64,000 bases of DNA, from positions 57,164,001 to 57,228,000 of the forward strand of contig NC_087246.1 in the NCBI RefSeq assembly GCF_037042905.1. The letters run 5' to 3'. The position numbers and the translations under genes are program-made. Shown in pieces: positions 17,124-38,676 of this stretch. The DNA comes from Lytechinus pictus (lineage: Eukaryota). The stretch's first letter is position 1; every line of letters starts with the position of its first letter. The notes beneath the pieces are model-generated. The model had not been told where the DNA came from. It saw only the letters and a program-made list of their open reading frames with translations, and ran no database searches.

Positions 17124-18269
17124 TACAGATCAGTGGTGATGAATTGATTTGGAGTCTGCTGAATAGGAGCATATTGCCACGCATTGTTATGAGGGGTGGT
17201 CTTGATAATTAAAATTTTGAGGAAAGGTACCAATTATTATCTGCACAAAGTTTCTTTCTGGTGGAGATTGTCATCCCAAAATTATTACCACCCAAACAGA
17301 TATTGGAATCCTAGGCAGGGAGGGGGCGACCCCTCACGGGCCCGTTTGATGCTTAACTGCCGTCATAAATTCTCATAGCAAGAAATTTGTGACGCTCCTT
17401 CGCAATATCAACCCGAAAATTTCACATTAAAAACATTCTGCCCCCCTTTTGAAAATTTCTGGATCAGTCCCTGATATATGTACATACACACCCTCATTTT
17501 TTCCATCCCCCTTAACACACCCACCCACCCCACGCACCGTAATAACTTGTGCGTTTATATACACTCACAGTCACTAAGAGAGAGAATTTAAAAAAATACT
17601 TTGACTGCAGTCTCCTTTTCCTAAGTTTGCCCCTCTTTTCTTCCCCCATTTTATTCATTTTTGTTTTGTTTTGTTTATTTAATCTCTTATATACAGCATG
17701 AAATAAACGTAGAGATATATCTCTATGGAAATAAATGTCTGTTATTGTAGTGTAGGCCTAATCGTTTCAACGCCGTTATCAATGTAAAGTTTTCAACGTA
17801 AGAGGGCAGTCTCCTGCATGGTTTTTATTCTGTTTCGACTTGAAGTTATCTTCTGTTCTATTCATGAAGAAAAAAACTGACAATATTCACAGTTATAGTA
17901 ACGCAATAAATTTTCTCATTGTTTTTATCTTTTGTAGTATGTAATTGATATTTGAATTATGTATTGCTATAATTGATATATAAGTGCTATACTTTAGGTG
18001 CAAATGAAACGAAATCAATTCAAATTAACCACTGGATCTGGTTTATGACTGAAAACCTCAGTTTGATATTCGCTTGGGAAATGGGCCAATTAATGAAATA
18101 TCTGACAAAACACCTTAATTTGATGAAATCCTTCTAGAGGAAAATGTTTCATCTCCAAAAATAATCAAGCTCAATATTTGGTCGGATATCCGATTCCTTA
18201 CTTCATAAAGTATTTAACTTTAACAATCTGAACGGGGGTAAATAATTCATCCAAAAATATCAATTTTTC

Positions 18270-20609
18270 ATGTATCATAGTTCTATCTTTTATTTCACAT
18301 AGAAAATCACGTATCAACAAAATCAATATCAACAAATTAAAGCTTAGTCGTTCTTTACATACTGTATATAAATAAACACACTCTCACTCTGTCACGTTTA
18401 TCGATCTCACAATAGTTTAGGAACGATAAATTCAGATTTACAAAGTTCAATTGAAATACTTACAGTTAATATTGGATTCTAACCAATGCCGTTATACTCT
18501 TCGGTTTCGTTTTATGAATTTTGCCTGCTTAAATGAAAAAAAATCATACCCGTTATTTATCAACTGACCTGTTAATTACAATTTTGGTTTGTCTAGTAAC
18601 TGGATATGCACCAAGTGTTTTCACCATGTTTACAGAAGGTAATACAAGGTAAAAATACAAATTTAATAACAAAAGAATTTCAGTCGATTTGTGCTGGAGC
18701 TCGTTGCATGAAAATCATTACTACGGTAACTTTGACATCATTCATTTCGACATGTTTGATTGGATGTTGAGCCGTGTTGCCATAGAAATTGCTATTGAAG
18801 TTAACTTAATAGTAACCTTTTTTGCAACAAGACCATGGGAACAATGTCATAAAACTTTTAAGGATAACAAATTTGCAACAACAGATTAAAGCTACTGAAA
18901 GCGTTCAATTGGATTCAACTCAATTGAAATAGACATTTCTTTGTCTTTCATTTGGCTTTGAGTAAAACTTGTTGTAGTAATTGTGGATTTTATATTGCAA
19001 CAAGTCTTCATGAAAATCGTCTTTTCCTTCATGTTGTTCGAAATTATTTTGTGATCTTTTGAAGTGTCTTCGCTTGCCCCATTGGCACTTGGCATCAATG
19101 GAAATTTACGTTGAATCGTACTGATTCTAGCCTGATGAGAACTACAACGTTATTTTCAATGGCATATCATCGATTGGACTATAGAGTTGGTATTTAGTTG
19201 TAACTGCAACGTTAAACATACCAAAAATATATCATTTAAAAAGCTATCACGTTTTCAATACATAAAATCTGTACATTATTCAAAAACTAATCTACAAAAC
19301 GAATTTACAAAATAAGGCACCTTTGCCGGCAAGTTACATGTTGGCACTTATCGCTGTAAATCAGACAATATTATGCAACAACATTGAAGATTTACATTAA
19401 AAATAATATATACTACACCCACAATAAGATATTGCGTAAATTCCTCACATTCAAATAAATCACAATCTATTCTATCTCGTATTGTATAAGTCTTATATAT
19501 TTACAACAATCATTTATTATTATCATGTACTGTTTACCACATCGTTATAAATAGGTATATATATATTTACAAAGGAAATCTGTACAAAAGAGCTCAGTAG
19601 TTAATTGCAAAAAATATATTCTTGCAAAGGAAAGTTACTCATGAATAGGAACGTCACTGAATTAATGGAAATGACTTATTAAAAATTAAAATAAAAACAT
19701 ATCAACGGTTTAACATATAACATTAATGTAATAATGTAAAAAAAAAAATACGCATTTTTGGGAAGGAAGTCTATTAACAAGGCCATAAGCTGATACGTAA
19801 TACGAAATTGCATTCTTTAGGCATGTTAGGTAAAAAAAAAACCGTTATATATTCCAAGGATTGTCTCATAACCTATTCAGAGAATGATTCTTATTAAAAA
19901 AAGGAAATTGAAAGCACAGAACTGGCCCTAAATATTTTTTTAAAGGCGTTGATAAAGAGATAAGAGTTCATGATAGGAGGACATTAAATCATTCATATAA
20001 TGAAAACAGAATTGTTAAATCAAGCAATAATGAAAATCCGATTGTGGCGGCATCTTTATCTAAGTTTCATTCTTCAGCATACATGATTTTCTTTTAATCT
20101 TGGATTCATAAATGCAAACTTTTACATCGATTTTTTTTTCATTTTCACGTAGCTAAATATTTTTAGTTTGTGTTCCTTATTTATCATACAGATTTGAAAG
20201 AAAGTGATATCTATAATTATAAATAAGCTTATCGCTCAATTTAAGGCTACATTGTATAAATCAGTTGCGAGTACATTGATACTGTTAAGGCTATAAGTCA
20301 AGGTTAACTATAAAGTATGATTTATAAGGCGTAATTTGGTGATCTTTAAGTTATTTGAAGGCACTTCTTAAGGCGATGTAATTCATAAGGCACTGAATAT
20401 TGAAAACGATTTATAAAATTCTGCTCCCGTAACGCAACAAGATTGTCATCAAAGAGCAATATGCAACAAAATGATAACTGATTGAAAAAAAAAAATTATC
20501 GTTGAAACTCCTACGTCCACAAGAAGCATACTTGCATCATCAATAAATAAACATACATAAGATATTCCATAAATAGACGGACGATCAAGAAGTGTTTTAA
20601 AATAGTTCT
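18270..20609 (-). other. Putative 3' UTR of the scratch gene (distal end uncertain)
   Basis: Follows the TAG and is U/A-rich in the mRNA sense. Candidate AATAAA signals at 19518-19513 and 18294-18289. Contains miRNA seed and Pumilio-type motifs. Confidence 0.45.
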
Positions 20610-20880
20610 CTAAGTGGTCCTGTAGCACGCAGACTCGACATGTTTGTAGAGATAGCTTTTGAGCGCGAAAGCCTTGTTGCACTTTTGACAGACGTACGGT
20701 TTTACGGTGGAGTGTGTCTGAATGTGCGCGCGCAGGTTTGATTTGTCAGCGAAGGCTTTACCACACTGTGGACAGGAGAAAGGACGCTCTCCTGTATGGG
20801 TACGGATATGACCTTGAAGAAGCCAAGGACGGCTGAAACACTTTCCACAAATGTGGCATTTACATCCAAGCTTGTGTGTC
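20610..20880 (-). CDS. scrt: Scratch-family zinc-finger repressor, coding exon 3 (fingers 3-5, stop)
   Basis: Acceptor CTTTTGCAG|G, then [101 protein letters not shown] and the terminal C2HC finger are Snail-superfamily hallmarks; ALKSYL is Scratch-type. Total CDS 1170 nt, 389 aa. Confidence 0.96.
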
Positions 20881-21245
20881 CTGCAAAAGTTATGAGAAAG
20901 AAAACATATATTAATTTACTTTGTTTCATTTTATTTTCATACCGAATCTTTTATATTTTTAGACTGACAACTGCAATAGATAATAATGATGATGATAGTA
21001 ATACAATTCAATTAATATATTCAAGTATAAAAAAGTTTGAAAATTTACCCTGAAGGATCAAATTGTCTCCAAAAACAAATACCCCATTTCTATCTTATAT
21101 TCAAAGCCAAGTATAATATTTCTTAAATTAAAAAAAAATCATGCTATGGATGAGCACTTTTAATTATATGATTTTTTTATCGTTTCGTTTCCTTTTAAAT
21201 GGGGACATCAGAATGCAATGTAAAGCTAAAAGGTTATAGTCTCAC

Positions 21246-22044
21246 CTAATGTGCATACTGAGTGCAGGCATTGAGACGTAGACCTTGTCACAGTGTGGAC
21301 ACTTCCTTGCCTTCTGGTCTGTAACGCTTCTGTGTGTCTGTCTATGCCTGGCCAGGTTACTCGAAGTGCTGTAGCTCTTACCACACTCAGGGCACGAATG
21401 ACCACCGGGCATCATTGCCCCGTTCAAAGGCGACACCGCCATCGGTTGCGATTCTGCCGACGTCGGACTGCCAGGTTGACTGTTGAAATGTGAGATTGGC
21501 GAGCTTTCTGATGAGGTTTGGGGCACGACCATACTAGATGGTGAAGTTGCCTTGATGGGACTTGAGGGAGTAGTGGCGCGGTCATTACGAGAAGGTACAG
21601 ACCCTTCAGCGGGTTGAGCATTACCTATGATGGAACCATAATTGAGAGTTGCGTTGGCTTGACGAATATGGGTTTGATTTAGAAGTCCACTGATATCATT
21701 AGGGTAGAAGAGGGCTTGGGATTGGTCGTAGTATTGTTTTTCCGAGCTGTCAAGCTTCTCAGCAAGTGTAGATAGAATAAAAAGTCCGCTGTGCGAGGAG
21801 TCCATGGTCTTGAGAAGCCCTTCCGTGGACGGGATGTTAAGGGTTGTCACTTGCTGAATCCTCTGTTTCTTCTTGTCCGCGGACGCTTCACTCCTAGGGC
21901 GCCCTCTGCGTTGCTTAGCCTTGCTGCCAACTTGAGAAGGGTGAGATGTTGTGTGGAAGTGGAAGGGTCGATTGCGTGGTGAGGTCGCCGAGACAACCGA
22001 CCTCGCAGATGGAATTTGAATGACGCTGGAGTAGCCATAGTAAC
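21246..22044 (-). CDS. scrt: Scratch-family zinc-finger repressor, coding exon 2 (basic/AT-hook-like region, S/P-rich region, fingers 1-2)
   Basis: Acceptor TTTTTTTCATTCGAAG|GT. The frame is open from YYGYSSVIQIP to CPECGKSYSTSSNLARHRQTH...CPHCDKVYVSMPALSMHI. Donor AG|GTGAG in phase 2; 799 bp fits phase 1 to phase 2. Confidence 0.92.
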
Positions 22045-25000
22045 CTTCGAATGAAAAAAAAAATACATAAACAAGTTAAACTACACGTCAAAACTGAAAA
22101 AAGAACATCAGTAGATTCGAGGTGATAACGAGGTCCCTTTGTTTTCATTTCTAACCCCACGTGGTTTTGAACATGATTACACCAAGAGACTCTGCCAGCA
22201 GATTGATATGAAAGTTACATTCCATGAATTCTATTGCAAAATAGAATAACACTTATATTCATTTTAAGAAAAAAATACAACACGGTTTTTTGGAAAATGT
22301 CTGTTTGGTGCTGATAAGGAACGTCTGACTGATTGGCCGGGATGTCGAGGTTTAGAGCATTGACATCGTCACCCTCATGTTATGATAATAAAAATAAAAG
22401 GGTTCCACCAAAACTTGATCGCATTTTACAGGGCAGATATACAGCTTGGTGTAAAAACCAAAAGTGAATGAAAAATAAGGATTTCATTGAAACCTGTGAC
22501 GTTTGCACACTCTGATTTTAATTTGAAAATGGTAAAAAAAAGGTCCAAGTTCATAAATCACTAACAACGGTTAGAAATATCAAAGAGGTTATTAACGAAA
22601 GAGGTTATTAACAAAAACACTATACAAAATAGTTGAAGTATCTTGAGCTATAAATCATGAATAATATTTGTCAAATATTTTCTACAATGTTTCATCACAG
22701 TCTTGTGGGATTTTTTCAGTTAACGTAAAACACAATATACGATCGAATGAATCTTATTGCCCTTTGCGTGTGTCAAAAAGGTAGAAACTGTGACTGACAA
22801 AGGGTAATGCATCATGAAAAATAGAACAAGTAAAAGAGCAGGTTATCGTCGATTTAATTTTAGGAGTTAGGACGTTTCATGGGCGGCAGTAGACTAACCA
22901 ACGAGTGGGGAGTAGAAGGATACATAGTGCGCATGTTAATCAAGCTCGCGTGCCAGCTGTCATGGGCATGCCGTTGCACATCAATCAGAATACACCGCAC
23001 CTAGAAAACAAACTCACCAACTCCATGAACTCTGGGGTCATATGACAAAGAAAGAAAGGGCAGGGAGGGAGAGAGAGAGGGAAGGGGGTGGGGTAAAAAC
23101 TTGGATGAGCTAAAAGCAATAGCAGCATCAGGGTTGAATAAAAAAATAGTCGACATTCCATCGCAGCGGAGGAGAGATGAAAGCGAGCAGAAGAAGAGAG
23201 GACGCGCGTCCTGATTGGTTGTGTCAAATAGATAGTGGTACTCTCTCCTGGGGCAGGCGCTGTGTGCGTCATGGTGGCTATGAAATAAGCAACCTCCCAG
23301 TCCCGTGCCTTACAGCATGCCGCCTGTCTAGCCAACCTCTCTGCCACGCGACCATTATTTTCATCTTCAGTCATCCTCACACTTCTCCTACTTTTTTTAA
23401 AGTTAAGTTGCGAAGGAAAAGTGCAAATCATCTGACCCCGCCGATGATTCTATTAGAATCTTGAGATACATCCTACAATGTTATGCTGTTGAGTTTATTA
23501 AAAAAGGATTTTGATTTTATTTCTTGTGCCTTCAATATGAAATGGGTATCGATAAATAAATCCTTCGGGAGGAGACCCATCTTTAATTACTCCATCACTA
23601 CAAAAGTGCGAAGCTGTCTGATGTAACCCAGTCATATTTTTTTCAATTAGCTGGTGGCCAGAAGAATGCCAAAGAAATTTCGTAAAGACCGTGTCATAAT
23701 AATAGTTATCACAAATGAAAATATAAGAATCGATTGTTTGCGGTGAAATTTCGTCAACTTTTTTTTTACGTCAACCACCACAACAGAAATCGTCATAGTC
23801 GTGATAGTCAATATTGAGTCCTGTATACATTAAAACGATCGTAGAGAATGGAATTATACATCCACAATATCATTTATTTCGATTTATTTCGCAAATCAAT
23901 TATTATCACGCTTTGATTTCTCGAAAAAGATTTAGGGCGGACAACTTTTCTGTAAGTGCGTTACCCACCCCCACCCCCTCAACATCAATTTGAGCTCTTG
24001 ATTCCATTTTATTTAGAATATTCTGTAACCATGTTCCCCAAATACTCTCCACTATAGGCCTGTATATCATTTATACTGTACCTCCATGATGTTACATGTA
24101 AATAGCCGTTGAAATTACGTTTGTTTGTAGGTGGTGATGGTGGAAGTAGTTCGCTGACGAACAGCTGTTTTCTTGATTGATTGCGAGAAAGATGAGGCCA
24201 GATAGAGGGGGCCTGGAGCAGAACAGACAAGACTGTTTCATTAGCCCAAATATAAAACATCTTCAGCACCATTTTTGTCTCTCTTTAGACCCTTAAGTTC
24301 TTCTTTGGCGATTGCGTAATCAAATGGTATCATGACTGAGGAATTTACAATTTCGGTTGTCCGCTTTGTAATTATTTATTGTTGGTATTTTCTCATTAAA
24401 AGAAATAATATCCTAACGAAAATTCGATCACGATGACAAAATCGGCACATGGACCCATGAAGTTGAGCTATGAAACATTGAATCGCTTTTATTATTTAGC
24501 TTTCATTTAATGTAATTGTTCCGGAGAGGTACTAATGTCACCAGCGTATGTTATTCAAATGCCCTGCCCCCGTTAGTGCATCTCTTTAACAGGATTAGTA
24601 ACAAACATGGCTTATATCACGTATGTACAATGATGTAACCTGTCGCTGGCCTCTATACCCTTCATCATCATTATCATCACCATCCTGTCATATGGCATAG
24701 CAACGAGAGCAAACCAACTTGTCACGCTTGCTCACTGGAAATCAGCCAACCAACTGATGCATGCCGACTTGATAACTGGTGGCTATGACTAGACAACACT
24801 TGTAATGCTTTAGTCATACCATGGGCGTATGATCATACCAACGATTCCGACTCCAAACCGATCAAACGATCGCGTTATCTGGTTTGGATCGGAGTTGGTT
24901 TTGTTGCTGTGACTGTAACACATCAAACCTCCAAAGTCGAAAGAGGAAATTAAAATAAAAAAAATCAGGGGTACGTTGTTGTGCCGATGATCAACTAATT

Positions 25001-38576: not shown

Positions 38577-38676
38577 TTTGGATGGCTGTTTCTGCAGAAG
38601 CGGCAAAGCAGTCCCACATGGCAGCCTTCTCCTTGTTCGGCCGGGAGACACGGCGGACTAGGAAAGAGCGAGGCAT
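38577..38676 (-). CDS. scrt: Scratch-family zinc-finger repressor, coding exon 1 (SNAG domain)
   Basis: ATG at 38676 opens MPRSFLVRRVSRPNKEKAAMWDCFAASAETAIQ (canonical SNAG start MPRSFLV). It ends at a strong donor A|GTAAGT in phase 1, matching the phase-1 acceptor of the exon at 22044. Confidence 0.9.

Follow-up and report, generated by a model that had tools for sequence, protein, structure and literature searches.

The question raised by this locus of the sea urchin Lytechinus pictus is whether a crowd of short motifs downstream of a minus-strand coding region, within the 64,000-nucleotide stretch of DNA analysed here (the window), forms a response element for the neuronal miRNA miR-124, and which of the motifs that miRNA would read. 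The gene is probably an ortholog of sea-urchin ScratchX and encodes a SNAG-domain, five-finger repressor of the Scratch family. As judged from sequence, its 3'UTR quite probably carries a miR-124 response module, which makes ScratchX a new candidate miR-124 target.

The identity of the gene is taken from its product, which matches the L. pictus "SNAI2-like" protein at 100%, while the best non-self protein matches are echinoid and include the P. lividus "ScratchX/Snai2" (76% over the variable exon). The label given by NCBI to the ScratchX gene of L. pictus is likewise "SNAI2-like". The joined coding sequence specifies 389 aa, and the N-terminal regions are near-identical in the proteins of L. 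variegatus, S. purpuratus, P. lividus and Diadema. A SNAG repression domain is present at the N-terminus, its exon being joined to exon 2 in RNA contigs, and five C-terminal C2H2 fingers can be read off the translation. Fingers of the VSMPALSMH and FALKSYL type, which we take to be diagnostic of the Scratch as opposed to the Snail branch, are found both here and in the canonical Scratch of the same genome, whereas the Snail of that genome differs (SLGALKMH, FSRMSLLNKH). Canonical Scratch is a separate locus (L007) and not the gene of the window. The S. purpuratus gene set has been reported to contain one snail, one scratchA and one scratchB (PMC2688512), and the assignment of L. pictus ScratchX to the scratchA subfamily is made by elimination only. 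The gene is laid out as follows, with coordinates given on the + strand of the window.

38577..38676, minus strand: coding exon 1, SNAG domain (MPRSFLVRR...); the loose end of an RNA contig at 22044 maps to 38577-38606
21246..22044, minus strand: coding exon 2, which encodes the linker region and zinc fingers 1-2 (translation, RNA contigs)
20610..20880, minus strand: last coding exon, which encodes zinc fingers 3-5; TAG stop, 20610-20612 (translation, RNA contigs)
18270..20609, minus strand: ScratchX 3'UTR, about 2.34 kb, containing all miR-124-type sites (spliced RNA contigs)
18289..18294, minus strand: AATAAA polyadenylation signal of the long UTR form (contig ends lie 13-20 nt past AATAAA)

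Both the 365-nt intron (GT..AG, minus strand) and the intron of ~16.5 kb are removed in RNA-derived contigs. Spliced contigs from different studies (runs X1 and X15) cover 18269-20879 and continue unbroken from the last coding exon to 18269-18276; they span the cluster of motifs and run on to ~18270, beyond all sites, which bears out the placement of these sites in a transcribed 3'UTR by the sequence-only reading. Raw RNA reads over the UTR numbered 0 and 3 (runs X19 and X20), with ~6% of each run sampled, which is too few to resolve 3' ends or strand.

The same genome also encodes the miRNA. mir-124 occurs at one locus, with an RF00239 match of 72.4 bits (cut-off 49) and a stable hairpin (-35.3 kcal/mol, z = -6.8). 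The genomic mir-124 ends ...AAUUAAGGCACGCGGUGAAUGCCAAG, a U lies directly before UAAGGCAC, at position -1 of the precursor, and the arms are near the Rfam consensus around the cut site. Seven motifs antisense to the minus-strand mRNA had been claimed on the + strand, and all seven were found in place (TTAAGGC at 20241, 20285 and 20368; TAAGGC at 20325; AAGGCAC at 20358; TAAGGCAC at 20386 and 19313), with the site classes correctly named. Along the mRNA they read as follows.

20386..20393, minus strand: site 1, canonical miR-124 8mer (mRNA GUGCCUUA), 217 nt past the stop; also a 7mer-m8 for the -1 isomiR
20368..20374, minus strand: site 2, GCCUUAA; 7mer-A1 for the -1 isomiR only, annotated miR-124 pairing through positions 2-6 plus A1
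20358..20364, minus strand: site 3, canonical miR-124 7mer-m8 GUGCCUU, 29 nt downstream of site 1
20325..20330, minus strand: site 4, GCCUUA; 6mer, for the -1 isomiR only
20285..20291, minus strand: site 5, GCCUUAA; 7mer-A1 for the -1 isomiR
20241..20247, minus strand: site 6, GCCUUAA; 7mer-A1 for the -1 isomiR
19313..19320, minus strand: distal canonical miR-124 8mer (GUGCCUUA), 1290 nt past the stop, in a highly conserved UTR block

Under the Bartel-class rule, by which a canonical site has a contiguous match to miRNA positions 2-8, or to positions 2-7 with an A opposite position 1, comparison with the mature miR-124 of the own-genome locus gives only three canonical sites in the ScratchX UTR (20386-20393, 20358-20364 and 19313-19320). 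The count of six miR-124 seed matches in the cluster holds for 20386 and 20358, which fit the annotated seed, but not for the other four, which fit the shifted form only. The seed of the -1 isomiR (UAAGGCA at positions 2-8, or UAAGGC plus A1) is matched by GCCUUAA at 20368, 20285 and 20241 and also by the UGCCUUA inside both 8mers, GCCUUA at 20325 being a 6mer. Duplex energies reach -15.4 kcal/mol at site 1, a value between the 1% and the 5% threshold for windows of the UTR, and -17.1 kcal/mol at both site 3 and the distal 8mer; the background has a mean of -7.4 kcal/mol. An ATTAAA at 20098 could yield a short UTR form lacking the distal 8mer.

Neither TAAGGC nor AAGGCAC is enriched across the window (TAAGGC is seen 18 times versus 21.7 expected), and the signal is one of local clustering only, with five of the 11 + strand copies of TAAGGC inside 153 nt. 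In a scan of all 6-mers in the window, no cluster of five copies other than that of TAAGGC was seen once tandem and low-complexity sequence was set aside. GCCTTA is present 5 times in the cluster where a first-order Markov model of the UTR predicts 0.023 (P about 5e-11), GCCTTAA 3 times versus 0.009 and GTGCCTT twice versus 0.006; after a rough correction that takes in every 6-mer, both strands and every position of the window, the probability is still ~1e-4 or less. A tandem-repeat or transposon origin was rejected, as TRF finds nothing in the cluster and shared units extend over only 10-11 nt; a multi-copy origin was likewise discarded, the stretch being single copy in the 812-Mb genome.

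Comparison among echinoderms favours the three canonical sites. In L. pictus, L. variegatus and S. purpuratus the GTGCCTT of site 1, site 3 and the distal 8mer lines up without a difference, although the UTRs as a whole are only 66% identical, and the three camarodont UTRs also keep the 29-nt spacing of sites 1 and 3. The distal block with its 8mer can also be aligned with Diadema setosum (E = 4e-16). In an unbiased count over the three camarodont UTRs, GTGCCTT ties for the top conserved repeated 7-mer with 3 instances; per UTR it occurs three times in L. pictus and in L. variegatus and four times in S. purpuratus and in Diadema, whose UTR extent is assumed, versus 0.07-0.10 expected (P 1e-4 to 1e-6). 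The UTR contains other conserved elements, such as UGUAAAU motifs. No GUGCCUU was found in the 3 kb downstream of the sea cucumber ortholog and one only downstream of that of the sea star, and therefore the link between miR-124 and ScratchX is not pan-echinoderm; these sea cucumber and sea star regions give no alignment with the urchin UTR. Downstream of the paralogs, canonical Scratch and Snail, 1.4 kb of sequence contains no sites of this kind. Logan contigs belonging to the S. purpuratus protein cluster (L003, L014-L016) are genomic pieces that end in the intron or at site 1.

Conservation of the GCCUU(A) cluster holds for the canonical sites, kept in L. variegatus and S. purpuratus, and fails for the four GCCUUA(A) sites, which are confined to Lytechinus; S. 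purpuratus and Diadema either lack them or differ there. L. variegatus has lost site 2 (GUUUU-A), where S. purpuratus has GCCUUCA, site 4 is common to L. variegatus and absent in S. purpuratus, and at site 6 L. variegatus has UGCCUUAA, at once a canonical 7mer-A1 and an isomiR 8mer, while S. purpuratus is without a site. Opposite site 5 in the alignment, S. purpuratus has a canonical GUGCCUU, which indicates turnover at this position. Such changes invite the tentative explanation that the GCCUUA(A) motifs are non-functional, being miR-124 sites in decay or in the making along with matches that an AT-rich UTR yields by chance, and that the three canonical sites alone matter; the disappearance of site 2 from so close a relative as L. 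variegatus and the weak pairing predicted for these motifs agree with it. Neutral decay, however, would not spare GCCUUA at four separate sites yet strip only the upstream GU, and the Markov model gives the motifs a probability of 1e-6 to 1e-8 in each UTR.

In both Lytechinus species GCCTTA occurs 6-7 times per UTR versus 0.3 expected and GCCTTAA 3 times versus 0.1. This excess, which goes beyond the neutral model and involves a motif without any longer shared flank, is consistent with a second reading, possible yet doubtful and raised already by the sequence-only reading, in which a Lytechinus -1 5' isomiR of miR-124 (UUAAGGCA...) reads 20368, 20325, 20285 and 20241 as well as the two 8mers, so that the cluster would contain six working sites across the two registers. 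The U at -1 of the precursor and its near-consensus arms are compatible with such a form. The shifted form is known in vertebrates as miR-124-3p.2, and its seed has been reported to be enriched in transcripts de-repressed in Dgcr8-deficient mouse neurons (bioRxiv 10.64898/2026.10.02.755877). The vertebrate pair miR-124-3p.1 and miR-124-3p.2, as named by TargetScan, uses the same two registers as those found here, AAGGCAC and UAAGGCA (same preprint), and the L. pictus precursor around the mature 5' end fits the miR-124 family consensus, as in the vertebrate dual-register system. Unlike the sites of vertebrate miR-124-3p.2, however, the shifted-register sites here are genus-specific, and the shifted form is hypothetical in echinoderms; a literature search on urchin miR-124 isomiRs returned nothing relevant.

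Further evidence weighs against the isomiR reading. Outside Lytechinus not one of the four sites is kept in its present form, the S. purpuratus and Diadema UTRs have no GCCTTA(A) excess, and the conservation of three of the four between the two Lytechinus species is what their 92% identity alone predicts. In addition, the sites belong to the weakest classes (7mer-A1 and 6mer), their duplexes reach no more than -10 to -13 kcal/mol, to which the isomiR adds 0.2-0.9 kcal/mol, and no compensating 3' pairing was found at the non-canonical sites. It seems rather unlikely that the Lytechinus ScratchX UTR gained three GCCUUAA and one GCCUUA readable only by shifted miR-124, one of them in place of a canonical site that S. 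purpuratus has retained.

The motifs might instead be bound by an RNA-binding protein, or by another small RNA with a GCCUUAA-pairing seed, and merely resemble miR-124 sites, which we regard as improbable. Such a reader would suit a Lytechinus motif excess that comes without the GU needed for canonical pairing, the GCCUU cores at +663 and +827 that are kept across species without canonical flanks, and the presence in the UTR of conserved elements of other kinds. Against it, the genome has only one mir-124-family locus, no known protein motif matches GCCUUA(A), and we know of no urchin miRNA with a UUAAGGC seed. Moreover, the motifs are interleaved with true miR-124 sites and have the GCCUU core in common with them, which points to the same reader. 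The four GCCUUA(A) motifs are best described as additions of the Lytechinus lineage, and at best as weak sites for a miR-124 isoform shifted by one nucleotide.

For the module formed by the canonical sites, Argonaute loaded with miR-124 is predicted to bind the proximal 8mer and 7mer-m8 and the distal 8mer, the proximal pair being separated by 29 nt, a spacing that usually lets neighbouring sites cooperate. Binding would be expected to lower the stability and translation of ScratchX mRNA wherever miR-124 is abundant, which in urchin larvae is the neuron-rich ciliary band. In S. purpuratus, miR-124 has been reported to be functional and enriched in the ciliary band, and Notch and NeuroD1, the targets given by a bioinformatic screen, are validated there (bioRxiv 10.1101/2021.12.10.471989). 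That system, which was studied with luciferase reporters and target-protector morpholinos, has in common with ScratchX the same miRNA, the same animal group and recognition through canonical seed sites; it differs in that NeuroD1 has one site and only the first tested site of Notch was active, whereas ScratchX has three conserved canonical sites and a dense cluster. Our literature search found no paper tying miR-124 to ScratchX and turned up no miRNA input to ScratchX.

The 3'UTR of vertebrate SNAI2/Slug, which like ScratchX encodes a SNAG zinc-finger repressor of the Snail superfamily, is targeted by miR-124 according to data from cancer cells (PMC10839798, PMC6797582), as is predicted here for the urchin gene. 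Urchin ScratchX, however, belongs to the Scratch and not the Snail branch, the true urchin Snail being another locus (L008), and homology of the sites with those of SNAI2/Slug is therefore unlikely.

That miR-124 represses ScratchX at all we infer, and so too the purpose of this repression, which may be either to keep a mesoderm and muscle regulator silent in neural cells or to shut it off during neuronal maturation. ScratchX has been described as a gene of the oral-mesoderm, myogenic and coelomic-pouch networks (PMC4549668, PMC4778923), and because of this published placement the switch-off as neurons mature, which the sequence-only reading had favoured, is uncertain, and it is no less likely that the repression serves to exclude ScratchX from neural cells. 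A neuronal "Lv-scratch" probe has also been published (PMC6371548), and neither the text nor the supplement of that paper gives primers or gene identifiers by which the paralog could be told.

Stark et al. 2005, Farh et al. 2005 and Lim et al. 2005 reportedly described tissue-specific miRNAs and targets that exclude one another, the so-called "anti-targets". ScratchX resembles such genes in that it is described in non-neural tissue (mesoderm, muscle) and is loaded with sites for a neuronal miRNA, while its paralog canonical Scratch has none; it differs in that its transcripts are also reported from the adult radial nerve (PMC7280269).

Regulation through seed matches in a UTR is nothing out of the ordinary. 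The sea urchin embryo serves as a reference for work on gene regulatory networks, its miR-124 is known to act on Notch and NeuroD1, and a conserved three-site miR-124 module on ScratchX would offer a testable post-transcriptional link between neural and mesodermal programmes. The shifted motifs specific to Lytechinus may serve as a natural experiment, on a small scale, for asking if 5' isomiRs influence how targets evolve in animals other than vertebrates; if their gain for the shifted register were true, a miR-124 5' isomiR would be functional and would shape the evolution of target sites in a non-vertebrate, with two registers acting jointly on one UTR.

The minus strand of the window encodes a C2H2 zinc-finger protein, ScratchX, with the TAG stop of its last exon at 20610-20612. 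The protein search returned a 100% match to the L. pictus "zinc finger protein SNAI2-like" and, next in rank, echinoid orthologs, among them a P. lividus protein that bears the name ScratchX/Snai2; the L. variegatus and S. purpuratus orthologs were also identified. Snail-superfamily loci number three in the L. pictus genome, each of them on the chromosome-scale contig C2, and comparison with the other two assigns Scratch-type fingers to the window gene:

L007, G000:C2:47141616-47144876, canonical Scratch, about 10 Mb from ScratchX
L008, G000:C2:64912059-64915319, Snail (fingers SLGALKMH and FSRMSLLNKH), about 7.7 Mb from ScratchX

At both of these loci a single extended open frame of about 300 aa contains the finger region, and the 1.4 kb downstream of each were free of canonical miR-124 sites (7-mer or 8-mer). 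Given that S. purpuratus has been reported to possess one snail, one scratchA and one scratchB (Kerner et al., PMC2688512), ScratchX would, by elimination, belong to the scratchA subfamily.

Transcript evidence was obtained from Logan contigs of two L. pictus RNA runs from different studies (X1 and X15), mapped on 17200-22200. One contig per run spans 21245-22044 and then omits 365 nt with minus-strand GT..AG ends; it is unbroken from 20879 to 18682 in X1, where overlapping contigs extend coverage to 18276, and from 20879 to 18269 in X15. Beyond 22044, contig sequence maps to 38577-38606, within the SNAG exon, so that two introns are removed and the contigs must derive from mRNA. The NCBI model P0001 (376 aa, beginning MTEDENNGR...) has its first exon near 23.3-23.4 kb (about 23300-23431, minus strand) and lacks a SNAG domain; in the RNA contigs, unlike this model, exon 2 is spliced to the SNAG exon (38577-38676). 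The resulting CDS encodes 389 aa, and in its N-terminal regions the protein is almost the same as its counterparts in L. variegatus, S. purpuratus, P. lividus and Diadema. As contig coverage ends 13-20 nt past an AATAAA at 18289-18294, the 3'UTR is about 2.34 kb long. Raw reads sampled at about 6% of each of two runs (X19 and X20; 0 and 3 reads) were too sparse for UTR ends or shorter isoforms. In the distal UTR, two X1 contigs differ at 10 positions over 18506-18711 and are probably two haplotypes.

Pattern search, together with a reading of 19000-22000, recovered every motif at the position claimed by the sequence-only reading (all on the + strand, antisense to the mRNA):

20386, + strand, TAAGGCAC, site 1, 8mer for annotated miR-124
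20368, + strand, TTAAGGC, site 2
20358, + strand, AAGGCAC, site 3, 7mer-m8 for annotated miR-124
20325, + strand, TAAGGC, site 4
20285, + strand, TTAAGGC, site 5
20241, + strand, TTAAGGC, site 6
19313-19320, + strand, TAAGGCAC, distal site, 8mer for annotated miR-124

The cluster lies 216-368 nt past the stop and the distal site at +1290; since the spliced contigs reach about 18270, the transcript does not end before 20393 and the cluster is within transcribed 3'UTR. The signal is local rather than window-wide, as neither TAAGGC (18 seen vs 21.7 expected) nor AAGGCAC (8 vs 5.4) is enriched across the 64 kb. Within the cluster, GCCTTA occurs 5 times vs 0.023 expected and GTGCCTT twice vs 0.006 under a first-order Markov model of the UTR, and a scan of all 6-mers for at least 5 non-overlapping copies in 153 nt returned only this cluster and tandem or low-complexity arrays. 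The stretch is present as one copy in the 812-Mb genome. A tandem-repeat origin was rejected, as TRF and a repeat finder detected no tandem structure and common units measure just 10-11 nt.

The same genome gave one Rfam mir-124 match (72 bits), which folds into a stable hairpin (-35.3 kcal/mol, z = -6.8). Since its 3' arm reads ...ACAAUUAAGGCACGCGGUGAAUGCCAAG, annotated miR-124 begins with UAAGGCAC; with the start moved one base upstream it would be UUAAGGCA, the register known from vertebrate miR-124-3p.2, the seed of which is enriched among de-repressed transcripts of Dgcr8-deficient mouse neurons (bioRxiv 10.64898/2026.10.02.755877). Six proximal seed matches had been proposed, and two of them (20386 and 20358) are canonical, making three canonical sites with 19313. 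At the remaining four (20368, 20325, 20285 and 20241) annotated miR-124 pairs at seed positions 2-6 plus A1 only, and they fit the shifted form alone, as three 7mer-A1 sites and one 6mer. Predicted duplex energies are -15.4 to -17.1 kcal/mol for the canonical sites and -10.4 to -12.9 kcal/mol for the GCCUUA(A)-only sites, set against a background over all UTR windows with a mean of -7.4 and 5% and 1% cut-offs of -13.9 and -15.7 kcal/mol.

For comparison, orthologous downstream sequence was taken from L. variegatus, S. purpuratus and Diadema setosum. Among the three camarodonts (the two Lytechinus species and S. purpuratus), some 1.45 kb of UTR can be aligned, L. pictus being 92% identical to L. 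variegatus and 66% to S. purpuratus. Sites 1 and 3 (GUGCCUU, 29-nt spacing unchanged) and the distal 8mer, in a block approximately 80% identical, are the same in all three, whereas the GCCUUA(A)-only sites are genus-specific: site 5 is AGCCUUAA in Lytechinus and canonical GUGCCUU in S. purpuratus, at site 2 S. purpuratus reads GCCUUCA and L. variegatus has lost the motif, and sites 4 and 6 occur in Lytechinus only. In an unbiased count of ungapped k-mers kept in all three camarodonts, GTGCCTT (3 instances) ties for the top with UGUAAAU-type 7-mers (3 instances each).

Motif counts per UTR, seen vs Markov expectation
L. pictus: GTGCCTT 3 vs 0.09; GCCTTA 6 vs 0.35
L. variegatus: GTGCCTT 3 vs 0.08; GCCTTA 7 vs 0.30
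S. purpuratus: GTGCCTT 4 vs 0.07; GCCTTA 1 vs 0.31
Diadema setosum: GTGCCTT 4 vs 0.10; GCCTTA 1 vs 0.34

BLAST aligned L. pictus +927..+1298 to Diadema +861..+1241 (E = 4e-16). Both sequences close the alignment with CUUGCCGGCAA..GUGCCUUAU, which shows the distal 8mer to be kept across euechinoid orders. The 3 kb downstream of the sea cucumber ortholog lack GUGCCUU, and neither the sea cucumber nor the sea star downstream region aligns with the urchin UTR. In the sea star Acanthaster planci, a GUGCCUU 7mer-m8 at +241 and a UGCCUU 6mer at +275 (spacing 34 nt) lie at a distance from the stop similar to that of the urchin sites; with no alignment to the urchin UTR, this pair may be chance.

A shifted miR-124 isomiR reading the GCCUUA(A) sites in Lytechinus would be the simplest reader for an excess of this motif that exceeds what the neutral model allows. 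However, these sites are confined to one genus, fall into the weakest classes of site and lack extra pairing: duplex predictions gave no compensating 3' pairing, and the shifted form gains just 0.2-0.9 kcal/mol over the annotated one. The isomiR is itself a hypothetical form in urchins, and dual-register reading is considered unlikely. The most probable mechanism is ordinary miR-124-guided repression of ScratchX, which would act through the two proximal canonical sites in cooperation and through the distal 8mer.

The UTR also carries other conserved elements. Three minus-strand UGUAAAU motifs (19565-19571, 19499-19505 and 19303-19309) are kept in L. pictus, L. variegatus and S. purpuratus; two of them lengthen to the Pumilio-response-element-like UGUAAAUA, and one sits 4 nt downstream of the distal 8mer. 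A perfect 10-nt palindrome, UUGCCGGCAA (19323-19332, minus strand), lies 2 nt upstream of this 8mer and is kept in L. variegatus, S. purpuratus and Diadema setosum. A long block, ...CAUUUCCAUUAAUUCAGUGACGUUCCUAUUCAUGA.UAACUUUCC... (19600-19700, minus strand, UTR +910 to +1010), is near-identical from Lytechinus to S. purpuratus and still recognisable in Diadema; the block has no miR-124 site, so the UTR must be under other regulators as well. Further minus-strand GCCUU cores occur at 19943-19947 (+663), kept in the three camarodont UTRs without canonical flanks (GCCUUAA in L. variegatus), and at 19779-19783 (+827; GCCUUAU in L. variegatus, GCUUU in S. purpuratus).

Our literature search found no paper connecting miR-124 with ScratchX, or with Scratch in urchins. 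SNAI2, a Snail-superfamily member, is a known miR-124 target in human cells (e.g. PMC10839798, PMC6797582). ScratchX is therefore a newly proposed target of this known regulator, and as a candidate it is well supported. In S. purpuratus, miR-124 is functional, with enrichment in the ciliary band, and has been reported to target Notch and NeuroD1 (bioRxiv 10.1101/2021.12.10.471989). ScratchX has been described as a FoxY/FoxL1-dependent gene of the network for myogenesis and coelomic pouches (PMC4549668, PMC4778923), juvenile muscle has been reported to express it, and adult radial nerve transcripts include it (PMC7280269); a "Lv-scratch" probe, paralog unstated, labels late ciliary-band cells (PMC6371548). 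The purpose suggested by the sequence-only reading, a switch-off of ScratchX during neuron maturation, appears somewhat improbable. Slightly more plausible, at a little under an even chance, is that repression would exclude this mesodermal repressor of the Scratch family from neural cells rich in miR-124, or clear it from them.
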